A stretch of 64,000 bases of DNA from Perna viridis (GCA_037379345.1 CM074524.1:13322885-13386884), one strand, 5' to 3'. Shown: positions 10,511 through 50,590, numbered from the stretch's first letter. The notes: generated by a model from the sequence alone, not told the origin. Program-made: numbers and translations.

Positions 10511-12529
10511 TTTGTAACATGCATGAACTAAGGACATACCATTTATGTAGCAGTTTTTATATATTAGACTGGAGACTATTTATGCACATCAAAAAGACAC
10601 AAAATTCACTATTTTTTTTTATTCAGAAACATTTTAAGCACATTAACAGCCTTAGTTTGTCATTAGGTTTTTAGTTGTATCATGTTGCAAGAGTTTGTTC
10701 CATTGTCTGTATGGTTTTCGCCAAAATACAGATCTGTATGCAGAAAGGATATGGCGTATAATGTATATCGTTGGGTTTTTCTGCACTTTGAATCACATTT
10801 ACCATTGTCAGTGTCTGGATATATATGAATTAGTAATTAAATTGACATAGACCTAACAATGAGATTCAGTCTAGTATTGCGCTAAAATGTATGAATGATT
10901 TGTATCGAAAGTCAGTACGTCATCTGCAGCTACTGTTAAGAAATATTGACGATGATCTTGGTAAAAAAAAGCACAGAAAGCGAATCATTGAATGCTACAA
11001 ATTACGTAGCTGATCTATCTGCTAAAGAGCTAAGATTAAGAATAAACACGATTATTCTTTAAGTACACCCATGGATAGTATGTAGCTGCGAACTACCAGG
11101 TTGAAAAGTCGAGTTGACGACCTGACTCTTGGGTCAGGCCATGCCATAGGAACTCCGCATCATCAACTGTTCACATTAATGACCTCTTTGAATGAAACTA
11201 TATTGTCAGATCGTGGAGTTTTTTTACTTTTATGTTTCAAACTTTTTCCCTGTCGTCTGACTTTTTCAAAGACTTATTCTTCATTATATGCATATTTTAA
11301 CTTATTATTTTTGTTAGGTATTTATTTGCGGATGAGTGTATTGTGCCCTTTTCATATGAAAATATCGTAGTACATGTATTACGATATAAGTGTGATCGGC
11401 CGGTTGTTCGTCCATTAACAGCGATTCGAGAGATTTTATGGAAATAGTATACACAAAGTCTAGAAGTAGTCCTGATAAAGGGAAACTACCATTCTTGCTT
11501 CCCCCCTCTTTTTTTTTTTTTGCCATGGCAGTTGGATTTTAAAAAGCAAAAGTGGGACACAGATAGTTCAGGCATTTTCGTAGCAGTTTTTTTTTTTCGT
11601 ATTTAAAAAAAATATTATCGTTTCTCTCGAAAAAGTCATTGTTTACCCTTTTTATGATTAAGTCAACTATAAAATGATAAACTGTATTCTTCTCTTTTTT
11701 TAATTTCAGTCTAGCACGCTGGTCGCTAGAAAAATGCCTCGGGCACATGCAATAGATGCCCAAGTAACAAAAAAATCCTATCTAAACGGTTCTCTTCCGC
11801 AACCAATAGCTGCAACGCACATACATGTACCATGTATGGTCTTAATGAAATCGCAAGTCATCACTACGAAGCAAGCGAAGTGTAAAAGCAAATTCGTAAT
11901 AAATAAACTGATGAAAGGACTAGCGGAAACCCAACTTAGATTCGCGGATATACATTTTGTACATTCAGAAGTTAACGTTAATAAAATGACTGAACTTTTT
12001 CGTTAGTTCTTTTTGGACTAATGCTAATTAGTGGCGTACTGATAAATCGAACAACTACTCACTGAGTTGTTTTTGGAAAGTGTTGTCTATGATTCGTGAA
12101 AAAGAATCCACTGTTAGAACAATAGGTTGAAGTCACAACAATGGTTTAAATTATTTTAATTTCCGCTAGAATCTCTGTTCTCTTTATTATTCTTTCCAAA
12201 GTAGAACCCTGATTTTTGTTCATAAGATTGTCATCATCGTCTTTTGTAAAGTCGAGCTTCCGTGAAGCTTGCTATTAAGTATCGCTTGTCCTAAACATGG
12301 TCGGTAAATCATAATCATCGTCTGTTTAAAGAATCGTTTACGCAACACATCGATTTGCGTTAAGTCATTTGGTATAGATACAAAAGTGTTTTTATACGAA
12401 ATATAGATACATTTCGTATATATACATCATTGCTATTTTGTTTTACATTATACCTGCAAAATTCATTGCTTTTCCACCACAGTTCAAAATAAGAGCGTCG
12501 CCTCTATATATCATGTCGATATTTAGATG

Positions 12530-13041
12530 ATTGATTGATTGATTGATTGTTGGGGTTTAACGCTTGAGCAGCTACATTTCAGCTATATTCAGGCGATGAA
12601 CATGAAATGGACGATAAAATTAACATGAAATGATGATGAAATGAAAAATGGGATGGGACACAAGGATAATAGGGTCGACAAATTTTGATTGCCATTAGAA
12701 AAGGGGAGGGATGGGTAGGGTCGGGCAATTTAGCCTCCTGTGGTCCTACTCTTATCGAATACCTCAACAGGGTTCTTTAACGTGCGAGGAACTTGGCATC
12801 TTTCCCAGCACGGTGCACCACTATGGTTTGCGGTCAGGTTATCCGTATAATAGCCTGAGAACCCCAGCATGTAACACGCCAGGGGTACCCCTTTCCACCA
12901 CCTAGGGCACACAACCCAGTTGCTCTGTGGAGAGAGCGCCCTAGCCCCCGGCTAAGGGTTCTGAGCACTATTTAGTCGCCTTTTACGACAAGCTTAGCGC
13001 TGCTGCAGGTCTATTCTTTTGATACCCGGACCTGCACGGGG
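12530..13041 (-). mobile_element. Full-length short non-LTR retroposon (SINE-like, non-tRNA head) with TSD
   Basis: Minus strand starts CCCCGTGCAGGTCC and ends CGTTAAACCCCAA(CAAT)5. Flanked by CGATATTTAGATG / CAATATTTTGATG (13 bp, 2 mismatches). The same 3' tail recurs at about 55150-55212. Confidence 0.8.
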
Positions 13042-13679
13042 CAATATTTTGATGAATTAATAACTTTCTTTGTAAAATGCATTTTATTTTGATTAGACCA
13101 ACAATGTGACTCGTTTCCATTGCTGAAATCGCGCTTTTCAAGCTGGAGGTCTATATTGATCATACTGTCCGTCCTTCCGTGCACCCGTCCACTATTTTAA
13201 TCCGTAGCTCCTCTAAAGCCGCTGAATGGAATTGATGAAGCTTTCACCCATTTTTTATTTACCGGGTGGGGGTTCCAATCCTCATCTCCTCTTAAATTTT
13301 TGAATTTAATTTGATGAAACGTTAAAAAAATTTTCACATGATGTCATTGTGCCCTCCAATTTCATTTTTCCATCTGAATGACTTGTATGGCTACCTATGT
13401 GGTTTCTGGTGAGATCAGCAAGGGGTATCACCAAGTAAACTTTGCCCATAGTTATTCTAGTTGAAACATGGAATGTCTGTCGATCTCAGTTGTTATAACT
13501 AGACTTTTTGTATGTGTAAGTTTTTTCTCAATAGGAATCCAGGATTTCAGGTTAAGGGGGTGTAAATAGAATTAAAATTTTGGGTACAATTTGTGAAAAA
13601 TCAAGATTTTATGCACAAGAAAAATCTTCTCCAAATTTATGGGGCGTGGGCACGGCACACCCGTGCGTGTTTGCATCAG

Positions 13680-13809
13680 NNNNNNNNNNNNNNNNNNNNN
13701 NNNNNNNNNNNNNNNNNNNNNNNNNNNNNNNNNNNNNNNNNNNNNNNNNNNNNNNNNNNNNNNNNNNNNNNNNNNNNNNNNNNNNNNNNNNNNNNNNNNN
13801 NNNNNNNNN
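13680..13809. other. Assembly gap
   Basis: Run of 130 N. Confidence 1.
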
Positions 13810-14051
13810 AGAAATCGATGCAAGTTTTACGTGACATGTTTTTACTTTCTTCCAGGGATGACGTGTACACGATTATAGACTGGGAAAAGAGATACAACTC
13901 TTCATCTAAATATACAGACCAGCATTTTTATATGACTTAGTGATAATTTATTTACATTACGTATACATAACAAGAACAAAAAATCAACAACAAAAACGGA
14001 AACAAATAAATACCGCCAGGAGTTAGGACTTTGCTATCATTATGCAGTAGT

Positions 14052-14741
14052 TTAATACGGAGATACTGGTTGAATTGTCATATTGTCACTGTAGAGCTGT
14101 GGAACGAATATTGAGCCTGGGTAATCAATAACTGGGTAAGCGCCGTATGTCGTGGGTAAACCGAATCCTAGCAGGAATGGGTTGAACATTGGTTGTCCTA
14201 GAAACTGATGGTAAGTGCTGAAACCTGGTTCCTGTTCTGAGTTGATATTAAGAGCTGGTCGCTTCCCGACACCGACGAACTGTGACAAGTTTTTAACACC
14301 GCAACTTTTCAGTTTACGCTTTTCTTTCATTCTTCTGTTCTGGAACCACCATTTGATTTGAGTCTCTGTAAGTTTGAGTTTCTTAGCGAGAACTGGTCGA
14401 TCTTCAATCTGGAGATACTTGTTAATAGCATAGTAACCCTCGAGTTCTATCAGTTGTGAATTAGTGTAGTTTGTTCGATTTTTCTTCGAAGCATGGTCCA
14501 AGTCGTCGTCGGAGTTGCCCGGACTTGCCGAATCTCTGTGCTGTGTATCGCCTGATGTAGCATTGCTGTCATCGGATTCGTTAGTTCGCTTTCTCTTTTG
14601 CTGGCCATTTGTAATATCTAAGCTAAAAGTAGGTGTCACATACCCCGGGAAACTCACTGGTGGATATTCTGGAACATCACGTATGCTGCTTTTCGCGAGT
14701 TCTTCGATTGAGAAGGACATTCTAGATTTTGTATGCGCCAT
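14052..14741 (-). CDS. Intronless divergent ANTP-class (NKL, Vent-like) homeobox protein, copy A, 229 aa
   Basis: Homeodomain at 14310-14489 (SKKNRTNYTNSQLIELEGYYAINKYLQIEDRPVLAKKLKLTETQIKWWFQNRRMKEKRKL); N-terminal MSFSIEELAKSS motif; basic QKRKR; TATA box at 14817-14825; minus-strand AATAAA at 13947-13952. Confidence 0.93.
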   Translation of the reverse strand: MAHTKSRMSFSIEELAKSSIRDVPEYPPVSFPGYVTPTFSLDITNGQQKRKRTNESDDSNATSGDTQHRDSASPGNSDDDLDHASKKNRTNYTNSQLIELEGYYAINKYLQIEDRPVLAKKLKLTETQIKWWFQNRRMKEKRKLKSCGVKNLSQFVGVGKRPALNINSEQEPGFSTYHQFLGQPMFNPFLLGFGLPTTYGAYPVIDYPGSIFVPQLYSDNMTIQPVSPY

Positions 14742-14744
14742 TGT

Positions 14745-15000
14745 TCTCTTCCTGTTGTATTTATTGTTAAGACTTGAGTACTCAAACTGACAATGAGTAA
14801 CTTGAGCGGAGTCAAACTTTTTATACCAAACTTACTGATTATTGTTAACGAGAGGCGATCATGGTCGTAAAAACATTTCAACTTCCAGCTTGGTCATAAT
14901 CAGTAGTAATCATTACCTATCACTGCCACGGGCTTGGGTACTCACAGAATCTTTGCCACACTTCATTGGGCAATTATGACCAATGATAAGTGATTATTAC
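14745..15000 (-). promoter_or_regulatory. Proximal promoter/5'UTR of homeobox copy A
   Basis: TATAAAAAG at 14817-14825 (minus strand). The flanking sequence aligns block by block with 21100-21341 upstream of copy B. Confidence 0.8.
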
Positions 15001-16275
15001 CTGACTGGTAGTCTAATGATTAACTTAATTCTAAAAGGCCAAGCTAAGGAATGTCATACTAGATTAAAATATATTTTACTAAATAATTTGTTCATAATAT
15101 GTTTATTGTATACTTCGAGTTACATCGAAGGTGTATATTATATAATGACAAATTACAAATGATAATAAAAAAGATAATTATTGTTTTAAATGGAATATTT
15201 TAACCGATCCAGTTTCATTTATTTTTTTCTCCTGGTAACAACCCCTCATCATTGTGTATTACACAAACAACGGGGAAAAAAAATGCTTTAAGAATAAACA
15301 CCGAATAACCTAGAATCTGTAAAGGAAATAAATGTAAAGTCATGATAAATTGGATAGCCACACGACAACGCCACTGCGACGTGTAATTTATTATAACATA
15401 TAATACATAAAATATATATTCCAACCACATACAGTAAAACACATATAAAATTTAACCGAACCGATCAGTAGGACGACGTCGTCGTGCCGAATGAATAATA
15501 TAAACGAAAGCCCGCCAAAAATCTAAAATATTTTGAGCGGGAAAATATAAGAACGGGTAAAACGTAACAACCAACCCTACACAAATGATGCAAATACCCA
15601 GGAGAAATTAATCTCATTCTAATTCAATACTTCAACCGAATGAAATTATAATTATATTATTATCGAACGCTTGGCGTTACTTTAAAAAAAAAAAAAACAA
15701 TTGATATCAAAGTAAGCTCCTGTGTTTGTGGGTCCTTATTTCTCGGAAAACCCAATTTTTACATTGTGTTAAATAATATATGGGTTGAGATCGGGTTTTG
15801 GGTTTTGTAGGTTATAAGCATTAGTTCAATCAACTGTACAACAAAAGCCCTCTCGATTATAACAATTTATTGGTCACGTACAACATGGAAAGAGTGCAAT
15901 GTTAATTTTTCATAGTATGAGGGTTTCGTTTTGTTTTGTTTTTGCTGTTTTGTGTTGTCTTTGTCGCAGTTTGCTTGTTTGTTTTGTTGCTGTTTTGGTA
16001 TTCGAATAAGGAATGATAATTAACTTATGGAAACGGCCTATCCAAGTTGTATTGCCTTGGGGTATAACAAGAAAACAGATGATGATTATTGGGTAATATA
16101 TATTTTATTCAAATAAACAACAACAATAAACAATAAGATGATATCATCAATGCCAGTAGGCAAATTAAATGAAACCAATATCCGTATCATTGTACAAAGC
16201 ATTGAATGACTACATTGTATATTGAACAAATAAATAAAAAAGAAGACCCTCTTATATCTCAATAACAGTTAATCT

Positions 16276-19200
16276 TTAGTTGGGTATTTCTTTGTCTACT
16301 TTAACACATCTAAATAGCTGTCCAATTCTACCCATGAATCCAGACTTTTGGTTGCCGATACAACCATTTGAGGCAACAAGTTTTCGGGCGTTATCATCTC
16401 CGTCGTTGATATGTTCCATGTCTAAGCTTTCACCTCTATTCACTACAAAGATGAATTCAGTCAATTAATGTTATATATTTTCATCTAAGAGTGAGTACAT
16501 GATTGTACACGTGTGGATCCAAAACAGTTTAGTGTCAGCAGTTGGAATCACCCTTTGTTTTAAAATTTCGTTTATTTGGGGGGGGGGGCAATAATATTCC
16601 AAAAAAACAAAATTAATTTTTTATAGGACACCTTACAAAATTCTTGAATCGGTTTTAGCTATTGGATATTCAACTGGGTCTACGACGCCCAAAATTGCAA
16701 CAGAGATTAAATCGGTCAGATTGTTTTGAAACGTAATATGCTATCAAGTTTTTATCCCACCTTTTCCACGTTTGACCATTTTCTTCTTTTGCATGTTTCT
16801 CTCTTTCATCTTCTGTTCTTTCTTTTCTTTTTTGAGTACTTTCTGCAGTTCTTTCTTTTCCCTTCTTTCTTCCTTTTCTGCGTCTTTCATCTGTTGTGTC
16901 CATGCTTTTCCGTTTATTTTATTCCTTTCTCTATATTTCTCTTCTACCATCTTTATATATGCTTTTACCGTTTTCTCTTGATATTTTCTCAATTGCGTTT
17001 CTTCTTTTCTTCTTGCCTTTCTCAGTATCTTTAATTCATTTTTTTTTCTTTTGCTAACTCCCTGAAAATGTGAAAACATGCTTAAAAGACGGTCGTTCAA
17101 GTTTTCGGTACAAAGCATTTTTAAAAGAAGACATTTCAATAATTTTGCATTTTTTGCTGAGAGAAGATGTACAAATACAGGAGGGAGGAATGGAGGGAAA
17201 TCTGTTTTAAAACACAAAAATCCTCGCTAAATAATTACAGTGAATCTTTTCTAAACTGAACCCTTAACAAAGCGAAAACCTTTTTTAAACTAGACACTTA
17301 ATAAGTACTTTTATATCAATTTAAATGTATTTTGCATCTGGATAAATCGAACACTTAATAAAACCGGACAAATATGCCAGTCCAAAAATGGTTCGGTGTA
17401 CGGAGGTTTCACTGTACCGGTACTTATAATAAATCTTCCGAGTCGAGGTATAATTAGGCAGGAATTGTCTCGCATGTTATTGGTTCAATGTAGGCACATG
17501 GCAATGATGTTTATGTTTTGGGACCAACCTTTTGCGATAGGGAGGCGGACTCAAGCACCACATTGCTGTTGAGTTCGGTCTTAGTTGTGTCTAAGATTGA
17601 AGACCTTGCTGCAATTTGTACTAGCTCGAGATTTACTTTCGACACTCTGTATACCGCTTTTCCTATAGCGTCCAAACAAATCAGTTTCGCTCTTTGGTGC
17701 AATATCTCCTCGGAATCGTAACAGTCAATCTGAGGGAGTAGGATAATTTAAAAATATGAACGATAAGAATGTAATTTCAAGATAAAACAAATATAAACAA
17801 GCAACCGGTATCAGAAAATCGACAGTAAATTTAGGTATAAAGCAAAGAAAGCCAGGACCGAAACAAGAAACCGACAAGAAACAAATAAGATTAGCAGTTC
17901 GAACTACATTAAAATTGAATAGATGGGTGGATAAGGGGGATATATCATCATTCTCTGTACCTACTGGGAATTGTTCATGACAAAAGACTTCACGATGTTA
18001 TTGATGTAAGTGTAAAATTATTTGACAAAAAAAATGAACAATAGAAACAAAAACAAAAAAACAAACAAACAAACAAACACACAAGTCAACATTTCATAAC
18101 TTCATTATCATTCTTTAAATTCAGTAAACATAAAGCAAAAGTAAAGAAACGGGTATCAATAAATTCCAAAACGAAATTGGAATGTTATAGAATGGAACGA
18201 AACAAATAGAAACAATGAGTTTTACCAACCTGTGTGGTTTGGTCGTCATATGTTACTTTGGCTTTCGGAGGCGTGTCATGTATTACGACATCACCATCCC
18301 TTCTTCCTTTGTATTGAATTTGGTCTGAAAAAAAAATAATTTAGATATTCCACGATGAAGTATTTAACACCAAAACTGAAACATTAAAACTGTCTTTAGA
18401 ATAGGTAGTGAATGTACATTATCATATCAAGTTTGTTATTTATTCAAAATAATGCATAAGTGAAATAAACCGTTGCAGTAAACACAAAAAAAAATAATTA
18501 AAATGTGTGTATATAAAAGTATATCCTAAATAGTAATTAATGTGAGGATAAAGAGACGTTTTCATACCCAATTTGTAGTCTGTGTTATTGTTCGTTGGTC
18601 TCTGCACAGTAGCCTTCTCATCCTCTAATTCCACTTTGTGGGTAGCGACAATGATAATATCCTGGCACAATTGTTTAACTGCGTCATTGATCGTTTCATC
18701 ACTTTCCAATCCGAGAACCTAAAATGCATGGAAGAGCACGAATTAAGTCCTAAGAAACCCATGTAAAGACTTCCTAACATGTTTGTTGTTTTAGATTCGA
18801 CAATATTCCTAGATTTCGGATATATTCTGAGTTTGGCTTAGGCGGATATAATACTTATTCCGGTATTCTGAAAGTCAGTCGTTACAAAAGGGCACCCGTA
18901 TATGCATGTAATGTATGTGTTAAATTTTAATTCAACATTAGTAAAATTTCTAATCATAAGAATTCAAAATTCGTACAAACCTTGTGCGTTAACTGTGTGC
19001 TTGGTAATTCAACTTTTGTTTCTCTTCCTTTCTCTGCAAGACAGAAATAAGAAATTAAAATAAAAATTAATAATAAATGTAAAAAATAAACCAAGAAGAA
19101 AAAAACCTGAATTTTTATCGAAATTTAAAAAAATGGATTTTGCAAAGTTTATTTGTTTGCAATTATAACCTATCTTTCCGGGATAAGAAATGCATGCAGT

Positions 19201-20202
19201 AAAATGTGAAAAATTGTCATTTAACGTTTTCTACTTACATGTCTATTACGATTCTTGAATAATGGGCTTAAAAGTGCGAAAGTCAATAAGCTAGTCAGTC
19301 TTGAATTCTCAAATTTACCCAGAGTAATCAAGGGAACCAAGATTCTAGCGGAAATCAAAAGAACGTAATCCAGGGACAGAGACCAGACATATAACAGACA
19401 CACGCACAACAAAGAACACAAAATAACCAAAATGATATATACAAAATAAAAAAAGAAAATGATCAACTCGTGGTCCACTATAAACTTGGAGCATGGACCG
19501 GGTGCACCGATAGGGTAAGTGGAGCAAAAAGACGGACGATAGTGCTCATTCAGATCTTCGGTCCTGATGACCTGATTTAGAATATGACTATTTACACCGA
19601 TTTCCCCAATCGGTTTGGTTGAACATGCTATATATAGACAGTATTAATTCAAACTTTAACCACTGGTGTAGGGCAGGGAATGAACAAAAGAGTTCATCTG
19701 AATAGGCCAATATCGCAATCTAAACAATAACAAATTCTTATATTCCAAAACAATATATTGAAGCTTAGAAATTAGTTCAAAGTTTGGCTTGCTGTCTGTC
19801 ATCGTTCTGTAACCATGGATTTATTACTCTAGTTTCTTCAGGCTTCCAGAGCTGGGGAAGACCTTATGGTGAACTCCGTTTCACCATATCCACTATTTTT
19901 TTGTTGTTATTTTTTGTTTTTTGTTTGTTTTTGTCTTTTTTTCACTGGAATAATATTCAAGTAAAGGCCGATGTACATGTGCATAAGAATTGTACTATGA
20001 ATACATGCATCAAATGACATGGTTTTAACTTGTTACACTTCGTACCCTTTCTGTCAACCTTTCCTTGCTTTTCAAATCTGGCTTCCAACATGGCTTCTCT
20101 GGATAGCTGCCATGCATCTAATGAGCAGTTGAACTCATCGGCAAATAGAGGACCTCTTCTTATGACCATGAAACTCTTTGTTTGTCGTCCTTTTCGCGCC
20201 AT
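16276..20202 (-). CDS. Orphan 374-aa protein, 7 coding exons, with two AKAP-like amphipathic helices and a Lys/Glu-rich coiled coil
   Basis: Coding exons 20202-20046, 19033-18981, 18718-18568, 18324-18230, 17729-17529, 17061-16761, 16442-16276. All introns are GT-AG with matching phases (1,0,1,0,0,1) and there is no internal stop. This joins five separate ORF-track fragments. 5'UTR intron 20430-20211 (GTAAGT..TAG); AATAAA at 16104-16109. Read-through of exon 6 to the stop at 16744 is a possible alternative end. Confidence 0.8.
19321..19527 (-). repeat. Interspersed repeat family E
   Basis: Homologous to 10296-10510; lies in an intron of the orphan gene. Confidence 0.7.
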
Positions 20203-20562
20203 ACTTTAATCTATTTAAAAAAGGTTTTAGAAACGCATCATATTTTATATTTTGAATAAAAATTGCTATTAGCTTCCTTTAGGTGATATATTATCATGCT
20301 TAAAAGTTCTGTTCATATAATATGTTTTATAAATTTATAGAAGTTTTGTTTTTAGGCAACGCTAATAAATACCAAGGTTTCTTGGAGAAAATGGCACTTA
20401 ACAATAAACTTTTTTTTTTATTAAACTTACGATTTCCGATTTCTTTCCAAATCAAAATCCAAACTTAGAAAGGCTTGTTATCTGTAGTGTTGAAAATCGA
20501 TGAAAGTTTTTCCCGAAGAAAAACACGTCTGTCTGCTCCGTCCGAAAGCAAAAGACAGTAAC

Positions 20563-20626
20563 GTTGCCCGTAGTAACTCTGTGACGTTAAAATGTGTACT
20601 ACGTCTGACGGTCCGAATTTACGTAG
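20563..20626 (-). promoter_or_regulatory. RFX X-box plus CRE-like sites upstream of the orphan gene
   Basis: GTTGCCCGTAGTAAC (20563-20577) fits GTNRCC-N0-3-RGYAAC. GTGACGTT (20581-20588), TGACG and TTACGTAG lie next to it in a CpG-rich patch just upstream of the non-coding first exon. Confidence 0.55.
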
Positions 20627-21099
20627 CATAGATACACAAAGTTTACCCTGTCGTAAAAAGCATGATAAATAATTTTTTTTTCTTTTACACTATCTAAATA
20701 ATCTTCCAAAAAATTGTCAGATTCAAAAATATACAAAATCAAGCTGCATAACTATAGTTTTTGTGGGTTTAATATGAAACAATTACTAAATTTTCTGCAA
20801 AATTAACGAACATTCTCACATATGCAGTTTTATCCTCTTTTATTTAAACAAAGTTTATCATAAATACAATAAAAGTACTATTTAAAGATACGAACAATTT
20901 ATATTTGATTTTTATTTTATTTTATTGTCAGAGGGAAAAGTCCGATTCCTATAGTCACCAAATCGAAAAAAATATAAGTTTGTTTTTTCTTTTTGTTCTC
21001 CAATTACCCATGTCAAACAGCAATCATGACAGAATAAATCACTAATAATAATAATAATCATTCATATAGAGTACCCAAGCCAATAAATAAGACCAGTAA

Positions 21100-21341
21100 T
21101 AATTGGTCATAATTGTTTAAAAGTGAGTGACAAGGGTCAACAGAGAACCCAAGCTGGTGGCAGTGATGGGTAATGATTACTATTGATTAATTGCAAGCTT
21201 TGAGTTGAAGTGTTTTGATAATGGTGATTGTCTCTTGTTAACATTAATCAAAAGGTTTCATATAAAAAGTGCGACTTAACTCAAGTTACTCATTGTCAAA
21301 TTCACTACTCAAGTTACAACAATAAATACGAAAAGAAAACA
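21100..21341 (+). promoter_or_regulatory. Proximal promoter/5'UTR of homeobox copy B
   Basis: TATAAAAAG at 21261-21269. Blocks ATTGGTCATAATTG, ACCCAAGC..GTGGCAGTGAT.GGTAATGATTACTA.TGATTA and CTCAAGTTACTCATTGTCA are shared with copy A. Confidence 0.8.
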
Positions 21342-22040
21342 ATGGCGAATACAAAACCAGTATCGAGAATGTCCTTCTCCATCGAAGAGCTTGCAAAAAG
21401 CAGCAGATGTGATACAACAGAATACTCACTGCAAAGTTTCCAAAATGATGTACTTATCAAACCTAATGTTTACCCCTTCGAAATCAACAACGACCAGCGT
21501 AAAAGAAAGCGATCATACGAATCCGACGACAGTGGTGCGGCATCAATTGACACACATCACAGAGATTCAGCAAGTCCAGGAAACTCCGATGATGATTCTG
21601 ACCATGCGGCAAAGAAAAGTCGAACAAACTTTACCAACTCACAACTGATAGAACTAGAAAGTTACTACAGAATCAACAAATATCTCCAGATTGAAGATCG
21701 ACCAGTTCTCGCTAAAAAACTGAAACTCACTGAAACTCAGATCAAATGGTGGTTCCAGAACAGAAGAATGAAAGAAAAACGAAAACTGAAAAGCTGCGGA
21801 GTTGAAGACTTGTCACAGTTCGTCGGTGTCGGGAAGCGACCAGCTCTCAATATCAACACTGACTCAGAGCTTAGCTGCAACAGTTACCAGCAGTTTCCAG
21901 GACAACCAATGTTCAACCCATTCCTGCTAGGATATGGTTCACCCGCTCTGTACAGTGCTTATTCAGGTTCAGACTATTTCAGTTCATTCCCTCGGTTCGG
22001 TAGTGACAATTTTACGACTAAACCTGTGTCTCCATATTAA
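21342..22040 (+). CDS. Intronless divergent ANTP-class (NKL, Vent-like) homeobox protein, copy B, 232 aa
   Basis: ATG at 21342 (ACAATGG) aligns with the copy A start. Homeodomain at 21609-21788 (AKKSRTNFTNSQLIELESYYRINKYLQIEDRPVLAKKLKLTETQIKWWFQNRRMKEKRKL). Same MSFSIEELAKSS motif and PVSPY C-terminus as copy A; AATAAA near 22136. Confidence 0.93.
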   Translation: MANTKPVSRMSFSIEELAKSSRCDTTEYSLQSFQNDVLIKPNVYPFEINNDQRKRKRSYESDDSGAASIDTHHRDSASPGNSDDDSDHAAKKSRTNFTNSQLIELESYYRINKYLQIEDRPVLAKKLKLTETQIKWWFQNRRMKEKRKLKSCGVEDLSQFVGVGKRPALNINTDSELSCNSYQQFPGQPMFNPFLLGYGSPALYSAYSGSDYFSSFPRFGSDNFTTKPVSPY

Positions 22041-22758
22041 AACTTATGTGCCTAAAAAGACAGTAGAGTTCTATAACATACTATGGTATTTATTTGTTAC
22101 GTTTGTTTATGTTATTGTTAATTGTAAATAATGCAAATAAAATGCTGAAAACTTAATCTTTCTCTGATATAGGAGGTAAAGTTCTGTTTACTGGACAATC
22201 CTGCATGGTAACTTGATGCGCGCATGTAATTATGTTATTTTTCAAAATCACTTTATGAGTTAATGAAGGTAGACGTTCATGGTGCTTAAGCCGAAATGAC
22301 CATAAAATGTTTAGGGTAGGCACACACAAATCTAGATTAGGTAGGGTAGCAGGAAAACAGACATTTTTTTTGCCTTATTTTAGTTTATTCAAAAAATGCC
22401 ATTGTTAAACAAAACGTGCTTAGTGTCAATAGAGCTAGGGTATAATATAAAGTCTCCTGTGACAACAAAGAGGAAAAATATATAAGAGTTCCCAACACAT
22501 CTGTTAACATGTAAAAAGTTTTATGATATTACTCGGGTGATTGGCTATTTTAGTCTAGTTCTACTAAATAAATGTTCCTGGCCATAATAAAAGACATTCG
22601 ATAACAAACCTCAACAACAACATATCAATTATAAATTTGATATAAAAAAAACAAAACAAAACAAACAATAAAAAAAAACAAAAACAAAAAAACAAAAAAA
22701 AAACTTACTGATAATTCATTGAAGGTCGGGATCAACTGTCTTAATTTAATACTACCCA

Positions 22759-22794: not shown

Positions 22795-50590
<27,796 letters not shown>

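Follow-up and report, generated by a model that had tools for sequence, protein, structure and literature searches.

The genomic stretch analysed here (hereafter the window) comprises 64,000 nucleotides of Perna viridis chromosome sequence (C14:13322885-13386884 of a 723-Mb assembly) and contains two homeobox genes, A and B, whose start codons lie 6,600 bp apart and whose transcription is divergent. Each gene is a single intact open reading frame (ORF); for gene B, a 270-residue ORF variant opens at an upstream TTG at position 21228, and the ATG is at 21342 (Table 1). The two proteins share 165 of 234 aligned residues (71% identity, E = 4e-115 by BLASTP) and differ at 5 of the 60 homeodomain positions. 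The MSFSIEELAKSS motif near the N-terminus and the PVSPY sequence at the C-terminus are the same in A and B, and both proteins contain RRMKEKRKL. Pfam analysis assigned each protein a single homeodomain (profile positions 1-57), which lacks the TALE insert, and no other notable domain; an eh1-type FSIEELA sequence is located N-terminal to the homeodomain (residues 10-16 in A and 12-18 in B). A genome-wide Pfam homeodomain scan listed no further match inside the window besides A and B. A first-pass annotation of the window had described two intact, outward-facing paralogues 6.6 kb apart with 55 of 60 identical homeodomain residues, identical N- and C-terminal motifs and no other NK or Hox genes around them, and all of these points were borne out by the ORFs, their coordinates and strands, the alignment and the scan.

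Table 1. Coding sequences, motifs and conserved upstream blocks of genes A and B (window coordinates)
Feature	Position	Strand	Evidence
Gene A coding sequence, 229 amino acids plus stop, single exon	14052..14741	-	intact ORF; Pfam homeodomain 1.1e-20
Gene B coding sequence, 232 amino acids plus stop, single exon	21342..22040	+	intact ORF; Pfam homeodomain 8e-21
Gene A N-terminal eh1-like / Vent-type motif MSFSIEELAKSS, residues 8-19	14685..14720	-	motif comparison
Gene B N-terminal motif MSFSIEELAKSS, residues 10-21	21369..21404	+	motif comparison
Gene A homeodomain, residues 85-144; Trp47 is the first W of KWWF (14343-14354); KEKR at 55-58	14310..14489	-	
Gene B homeodomain, residues 90-149; Trp47 is the first W of KWWF (21744-21755)	21609..21788	+	
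Gene A 5' untranslated region (5'UTR)/promoter block, conserved with the gene B upstream block	14744..14992	-	inverted repeat, 74% identity
Gene B 5'UTR/promoter block, counterpart of 14744-14992	21094..21341	+	inverted repeat, alignment

Genes A and B are under selection and gene A is transcribed

Both genes are under purifying selection. For A versus B, the ratio of nonsynonymous to synonymous divergence (dN/dS) comes to 0.20 for the whole coding sequence, with 0.058 for the homeodomain and 0.26 for the rest. Gene A is transcribed at a low level and in some samples only. Contigs confined to gene A, and matching it without mismatches or splice joints, were found in X1 (14029-14412 and 14678-14864) and X6 (14208-14376 and 14649-14811), two sequencing runs from different studies with coded sample identities. 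X1 is the one of the two shown to be RNA, as it contains a spliced contig with a GT-AG joint from the gene located between A and B. Two sister runs of X1 held next to none of the sampled gene A words, and in the raw RNA-seq runs X9 and X10 no read fell on the coding sequence of gene A, which indicates restricted expression rather than silence. In the first-pass annotation, lack of expression at any stage was to count against the proposed reading; for gene A, contigs are present in both X1 and X6.

The pair is a mytilid offshoot of ANTP NKL Clade I

Search with the full-length proteins returned about 40 relatives of 40-50% identity. The named ones are all Mytilus proteins, which narrows the probable bivalve of the first-pass annotation to a mytilid mussel. 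The automatic names of these Mytilus relatives conflict with one another (HOX_3, NKX3-1, GBX, Rx-B-like, zampogna-like, koza-like, MSH-B-like and ceh-30-like), and all of the roughly 40 proteins have a tryptophan at homeodomain position 47 (IKWWFQNRRMKEKR). A word-index search with the homeodomain only as the query returned the Mytilus family alone and no outgroup. The P. viridis genome encodes five such Trp47 genes, namely A and B on C14, L003 on C7, and L004 and L005 on C1, together with two close relatives bearing threonine at this position (L006 on C8 and L007 on C10). Mytilus coruscus has at least a dozen Trp47-type genes. Wider relatives were sought in 1.8 billion representative proteins and by profile search, and Thr47 relatives were identified in scallops, oysters, clams, unionids, Pinctada, gastropods (Patella, Haliotis and Gigantopelta) and a chiton.

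ANTP NKL Clade I has been described as lophotrochozoan-specific and without counterpart elsewhere, with Cgi_NKL (CGI_10028802) as its sole oyster gene (Paps et al. 2015) and KEKR at the C-terminal end of the homeodomain as its signature (Paps 2015; PMC5322547). The Cgi_NKL homeodomain printed in the supplement of that study fits the clade recovered here, in which the P0217 cluster includes a Crassostrea gigas protein. Our maximum-likelihood tree was calculated from 153 homeodomains; the ANTP-type homeodomains of P. viridis were represented by all unsplit ones and by partial ones for split homeoboxes. In the first tree, the intron-bearing parent gene described below was represented by the 45 residues of its first homeobox exon, and it was omitted from the second. 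The Trp47 genes form one clade (support 99/93). They are nested among intron-free mytilid genes that are themselves a clade (100/99), and this mytilid clade is nested in turn in a molluscan Clade I of 60 rows (98/80) comprising oyster, scallop, clam, chiton and gastropod genes. A 99/93 branch divides the HOXL genes from the NKL group that holds the window genes, and in the same genome the genes of the Nk2/3/4, Msx, Gbx, Hmx and Tlx types fall outside Clade I. A and B belong to the NKL group of the ANTP class and lie within ANTP NKL Clade I as a mytilid-only, intron-free Trp47 offshoot. The NKL class and the eh1-like N-terminal motif proposed by the first-pass annotation agree with the tree and with the FSIEELA sequence.

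Two other identities were considered and rejected. The Hox3-, Nk3- and Gbx-type names of the Mytilus relatives are wrong, as the tree separates the HOXL, Nk2/3/4, Msx and Gbx types. A Bsx identity fails because the first homeobox exon of the P. viridis gene that we take to be Bsx (L056), going by the sequence of that family, falls with the Barx, Dbx and BarH types and not with the window genes.

Compared with other Clade I members such as oyster Cgi_NKL (PMC6118893), the window genes have the same homeodomain backbone, the same KEKR at positions 55-58 and the same FSIExLAKSS N-terminal motif. They also share a post-homeodomain motif, which reads GGVD.AQL...G.PCPPP in the parent and CGVKNLSQFVGVGKRP in the window genes. 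They differ in being intron-free (the parent has two introns), in having Trp47 where Thr47 is found otherwise, in the Tyr19-Tyr20 of their helix 1, and in being part of a multi-copy mytilid expansion, of which our literature search found no account. The pair is no orphan family: ANTP NKL Clade I is already known and named, if little studied, and A and B represent a probably retrocopied, mussel-specific Trp47 variant of it.

An intron-bearing parent gene and its intron-free copies

The P. viridis genome retains a parent gene (L072, C3:4976395-4978067) with three exons and a phase-0 intron between homeodomain residues 44 and 45. Exon 1 encodes MLVLESNKPKKMAFTIENLAKSSRDD..., exon 2 covers homeodomain residues 1-44 (...YLPANERSHLAEKLKLSDQQ), and exon 3 continues after the acceptor CAG with GTC AAG ACT TGG, encoding Val45-Lys-Thr47-Trp48. 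The parent groups with Mytilus coruscus P0211 and oyster genes in the tree and is therefore the Cgi_NKL orthologue. Hhex (L059, C3:5.43 Mb) is located some 450 kb away from it. The same chromosome bears two Tlx genes as well as genes of the Msx, Lbx, Nk1, Hmx and Emx types, the latter identified by signature, and is thus an NKL linkage chromosome.

Seven intron-free copies were found in the same genome, each of them one ORF that takes in the N-terminal motif, the homeodomain and the C-terminus, and they are dispersed over five chromosomes (C14, C7, C1, C8 and C10). In Mytilus, P0021 (Trp47) and P0197, the orthologue of L007, are likewise single-exon genes, P0197 being nested in an intron of another gene; the Mytilus parent P0211 and the scallop paralogues P0230 and P0210 have kept their introns. 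The neighbours of P0021 in Mytilus trossulus encode a transposase and ATP-synt_C, unlike the neighbours in the window. The intronless structure reported in the first-pass annotation is confirmed by the single ORFs, the gene A contigs free of splice joints and the three-exon parent in the same genome. Judged by their gene structure, the intron-free copies are most likely retrogenes: both introns are missing throughout a single monophyletic mytilid clade and the copies are spread over five chromosomes, for which one retroposition with subsequent duplication is the best explanation.

Several further observations were made around these copies. The nested orthologue of L007 in Mytilus edulis (L079, 5001-5828) lies on the opposite strand to its host, an AIF-like oxidoreductase gene, a nesting that is typical of retrogenes. 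An A-rich tract of 60 nucleotides (22644-22703) is located about 600 nucleotides 3' of the gene B stop codon and may be a relic of a poly(A) tail, which is unproven. A run of N (13680-13809) lies downstream of gene A.

A local inverted duplication includes a conserved upstream block

In the inverted duplication that relates A and B, the coding sequences are 82% identical, and similarity continues for about 250 bp on their upstream side (74%; 14744-14992 versus 21094-21342). Synonymous divergence (dS) between the two genes is 0.82, and conservation of the upstream block is much above the level left by a dS of about 0.8. The block contains TAAT/TGATTA-rich stretches (GGTAATGATTACTA.TGATTA) and a TATAAAAAG element; by their sequence, the TAAT-type sites are candidate homeodomain binding sites for regulation or autoregulation. 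The 5'UTR of gene A is at least 123 nucleotides long, as the X1 contig extends to 14864. This contig begins upstream of a TATA-like element, which therefore may not be the promoter in use.

Trp47 is a derived state in the recognition helix

Trp47 occurs in 46 of the 330 distinct homeodomains collected, all of them in the family of the window genes, and in 5 of the 62 P. viridis homeodomains readable at this position. Codon 47 is TGG in the window genes and ACA or ACT where threonine is encoded, a difference at all three codon positions. Thr47 of Cgi_NKL (KTWFQNRRMKEKR) is replaced by tryptophan in both A and B; Trp47 is a derived state within Clade I and gives no ground for excluding the genes from it. 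Residue 47 is located on the recognition helix, where it touches the core of the binding site, and is normally isoleucine, valine or threonine. A tryptophan at this core-contacting position is therefore likely to alter the DNA specificity of the homeodomain.

A probable mussel-specific retrogene subfamily of putative repressors

We assign a probability of about 70% to the reading in which A and B are functional paralogues of a mytilid-specific, processed subfamily derived from Clade I, members of its Trp47 branch that arose by local inverted duplication and probably act as repressors. The sequence of events would be as follows. An mRNA-derived copy of the intron-bearing Clade I gene, the Cgi_NKL orthologue, would have arisen in the mussel lineage with both introns gone. 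This retrocopy would then have multiplied and dispersed to give the seven intron-free copies on five chromosomes, and one branch would have exchanged Thr47 of the recognition helix for tryptophan. The pair in the window would stem from a later local inverted duplication (dS about 0.8) that carried along about 250 bp of promoter and 5'UTR.

Each protein is probably a sequence-specific transcriptional repressor. The homeodomain would bind DNA, with a specificity probably altered by Trp47, and the N-terminal FSIEELAKSS, an eh1 variant shared with chordate Vent proteins, would probably recruit a Groucho/TLE corepressor. In AmphiVent1, transcriptional repression and binding of the Groucho corepressor Grg4 reside in the N-terminus, and every Vent protein tested represses (PMC3033397); by analogy with these data, the mussel proteins may repress in a Groucho-dependent manner. 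An early-embryonic or germline role is likewise conceivable.

Several points weigh against this reading. Neither a clear poly(A) relic nor a target-site duplication could be demonstrated, the A-rich tract 3' of gene B being the single candidate, and intron loss by another route is possible. The deep nodes of the 60-column homeodomain tree are weak. Contig depth on gene A is low (3-5), in samples of coded identity. The N-terminus of Xenopus Ventx2 has been described as a transactivation domain (PMC8911082), and both the altered DNA specificity and the Groucho dependence are what we infer from sequence and from analogy.

Possible relationship of Clade I to chordate Vent genes

The first-pass annotation had offered two possibilities, that the pair are Vent-like orthologues in a spiralian or that they form an NKL family particular to one lineage, and had proposed homeodomain phylogeny as one of the checks. 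Placement in a named spiralian clade as a mytilid-only offshoot and the presence of a motif shared with Vent both hold; a supported Vent clade was not obtained, the Vent grouping being a polytomy. Above Clade I, this polytomy consists of Clade I itself, vertebrate Vent genes with two coral genes (90/84), and the amphioxus vent1-like proteins with the Lbx, Bsx, Barx, Dbx and BarH types. The two coral proteins, P0244 (Acropora) and P0150 (Montipora), carry 'vent1-like' or 'koza-like' names and are without the N-terminal motif.

The motif K-x-x-F-S-(I/V)-E-x-L-A-(Q/K/R)-S-S-R occupies the same position in shark, coelacanth, caecilian, Xenopus, amphioxus vent1-like and mollusc Clade I proteins. 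It reads RMSFSIEELAKSS in the window genes, RMAFTIENLAKSSRDE in the Mytilus parent and FSIEFLARSSHDE in oyster; the amphioxus protein, which NCBI automatically names vent1-like, has NHIFSIERLAQSSR (longer excerpt, NHIFSIERLAQSSRVQ), skate KGMFSIAWLAQSSR (KGMFSIAWLAQSSRD) and coelacanth KGSFSVEWLAQSSRS. The Ventx N-terminal motif that the first-pass annotation had quoted is real; Xenopus tropicalis P0262, which groups with the vertebrate Vents, reads AFSSVEWLAQSS (also AFSSVEWLAQSSR and AFSSVEWLAQSSRRS). A strict form of the pattern matched 27 of 31 chordate Vent proteins, both amphioxus proteins, 48 of 64 Thr47 Clade I proteins and 32 of 44 Trp47 proteins; among 64 other single-homeodomain proteins, including 17 with an ordinary eh1 (FSI..IL), there was no match. 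The vertebrate Vent rows in this comparison were assigned by tree group, several of them having uninformative source names, and FS(V/I)EWLAQSS as a Ventx-defining motif is our own reading of the alignment and no published criterion.

Among the alternatives, most weight goes to one in which Clade I genes are true Ventx orthologues and Ventx was already present in the bilaterian ancestor or before it; A and B would then be derived mussel co-orthologues of Vent that act as BMP-linked early repressors. We consider this a genuine possibility at somewhat less than even odds. Besides the positioned N-terminal motif, Clade I and Vent have Thr47 and Met54-Lys55 in common, Thr47 being present in the parent (L072/L058), L006 and L007. 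Bowfin VENT1 has L007 as its best match in the P. viridis genome (73.2 bits versus 66.7 for the next gene), and the amphioxus protein is equally similar to the Mytilus parent and to skate Vent (85.9 bits each). Many mollusc members have received the NCBI automatic names vent1-like, vex1-like and pv.1. Forcing Clade I and Vent into monophyly cost 4.2 log-likelihood units and was not rejected by the approximately unbiased (AU) test (p = 0.35), which in itself proves nothing. The parent chromosome, with Hhex and Tlx, is also comparable to human 10q, on which VENTX lies with TLX1, VAX1 and NKX6-2.

Against such orthology stands the polytomy, in which the amphioxus proteins are placed beside the Lbx-type gene and the vertebrate Vents join cnidarian genes and not molluscs. 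Adding the 16-residue N-terminal motif to the alignment did not resolve Vent and Clade I; the Bsx-, Barx-, BarH-, Dbx- and Lbx-type genes of P. viridis had been entered as homeobox exons lacking motif data and could therefore float. A motif of 10 residues could have arisen by convergence or be retained from an NKL ancestor, and Thr47 is shared by the Ventx and Bar families (PMC8911082); the window genes themselves lack this common residue. A and B are just the fifth and sixth matches of bowfin VENT1, and the best matches of gene A outside its family are Hox-type homeodomains, those of the Hox1 type being nearer than Vent by raw score. QNRRMK, given as typical of Ventx in the first-pass annotation, is too narrow a criterion, as Met54 also occurs in Barx-type and Hox-type homeodomains of the genome. 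PDB sequence searches gave a mixture of Nkx3.1, HoxB1, Gbx1, Pdx1, Barhl2 and Tlx-type chains, with no Vent chain among the matches listed, and thus do not classify the family. In the literature, Ventx is regarded as confined to chordates or even to vertebrates, and our literature search found no paper tying a spiralian gene to Ventx.

Compared directly with the chordate genes (Xenopus Ventx1/2, zebrafish vox/vent/ved, human VENTX and amphioxus Vent1/2), the mussel family has the same FS(V/I)E(W/x)LA(Q/K)SS(R) at residues ~5-20 and the same helix 3, Gln44-(I/V)-Lys-x-Trp-Phe-Gln-Asn-Arg-Arg-Met-Lys, with Thr47 in the parent and sister paralogues. The proteins are small in both groups (about 220-340 amino acids), and a tendency towards duplication and retrocopying is common to both, with seven processed pseudogenes recorded for human VENTX (PMC2211742). 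The differences are Trp47 and KEKR in the window genes in place of K(L/M/Y)KR, and the absence of a supported joint clade. Ventx genes are further characterised by BMP-responsive expression on the ventral side, by repressing Goosecoid and Chordin and by Groucho binding (PMC3033397). As far as sequence comparison reaches, the Vent-like reading of Clade I is partly supported, a well-founded but unproven hypothesis that concerns the whole family. A more specific version can be put forward only tentatively, in which Clade I would be the protostome counterpart of Ventx and the mussel retrocopies would have radiated with Trp47, a new specificity, Groucho dependence and restriction to a stage or tissue.

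Other origins of the family

A second alternative takes Clade I as a spiralian or molluscan novelty derived from a BarH/Barx/Bsx-type NKL gene, its N-terminal likeness to Vent being convergence on a Groucho-binding peptide. Clade I was indeed reported as lophotrochozoan-specific (Paps et al. 2015); in our tree it lies in a supported group (98/81) with BarH, Barx, Bsx, Dbx and Lbx types and is not resolved together with Vent, and UniProt names some members BARHL or Brain-specific homeobox. The Bsx-type (L056), Barx-type (L055) and BarH-type (L023-L026) genes of P. viridis nevertheless group apart from Clade I, and the LA(Q/K)SSR tail, unneeded for eh1, is seen just in Vent and Clade I proteins. 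Such an origin is a real possibility, if less likely than not, and we hold it slightly less probable than Ventx orthology.

It is very improbable that A and B are retrocopies in decay or devoid of function, processed pseudogenes whose frames are still open by chance. The intron-free, dispersed, multi-copy nature of the family and the low or absent expression in most runs would fit such a state, but both ORFs are intact despite a dS of 0.82, homeodomain dN/dS is 0.06, the upstream 250 bp are conserved and gene A is transcribed in two studies. Open frames are moreover found throughout the Trp47 clade, in the P. viridis genome, in four named Mytilus species and in further sources. Least credible of all is that the pair represent a diverged branch of an established, canonical family (Hox3, Nkx3-1, Gbx, Msx, Rx, zampogna, koza or ceh-30), as the source names and the best PDB matches (Nkx3.1, HoxB1, Gbx1, Pdx1 and Barhl2) might suggest, for the names contradict each other, no PDB family stands out, and the genes are set off from HOXL by the 99/93 branch and lie apart from the Nk2/3/4-, Msx- and Gbx-types of their own genome.

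Other transcribed and repeated sequences in the window

The gene located between A and B (16229-18325, minus strand) is covered by an X1 contig of 1178 nucleotides with exons at 16229-16441, 16761-17063, 17537-17729 and 18230-18325; its last joint reads CT..AC, that is, GT-AG on the minus strand. This spliced contig indicates that the 'orphan gene' between the homeobox genes is really transcribed. Just 3' of gene A, positions 12500-13099 show a depth of 10^4-10^5 in X1 and X6, with many variants, loose ends and tens of raw RNA reads; this segment is a high-copy or highly expressed repeat. A single-exon ORF of 516 amino acids at 43785-45335 (minus strand) has a B-box-like N-terminus, a coiled-coil and C-terminal repeats, and looks like a TRIM/NHL-like gene of a kind that is expanded in bivalves.

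Discussion

Like the SPILE/TALE clades of spiralians (PMC5322547, PMC8524836), the mussel subfamily consists of rapidly duplicated, divergent and lineage-restricted homeobox genes. In P. viridis and Mytilus, the expansion is accompanied by a change at the recognition helix and by loss of introns. Young lineage-specific homeobox expansions that act in early development also include eutherian ETCHbox, Obox and Dux and lepidopteran Shx. Some of these similarly have altered recognition-helix residues and some are intron-poor; they differ in deriving from TALE, PRD and Hox3 genes.

Ventx- and Nanog-type genes are central to vertebrate dorsoventral patterning and pluripotency and are treated in the literature as chordate or vertebrate inventions. 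The occurrence of the Vent N-terminal repression motif in a spiralian family allows the origin of Ventx to be tested outside chordates. Were Clade I the counterpart of Ventx, Ventx would be no younger than the bilaterian ancestor; a still earlier origin is hinted at by the cnidarian 'vent1-like' genes that group with vertebrate Vent. The placement of the Trp47 genes also resolves the contradictory automatic names (Hox3, Nkx3-1, Gbx, Rx and Msx) given to their relatives in Mytilus genomes. The mussel genes represent a probably retrocopied regulator that is still functional and has multiplied with a change in a DNA-contacting residue, and they could show how new transcription-factor specificities arise.

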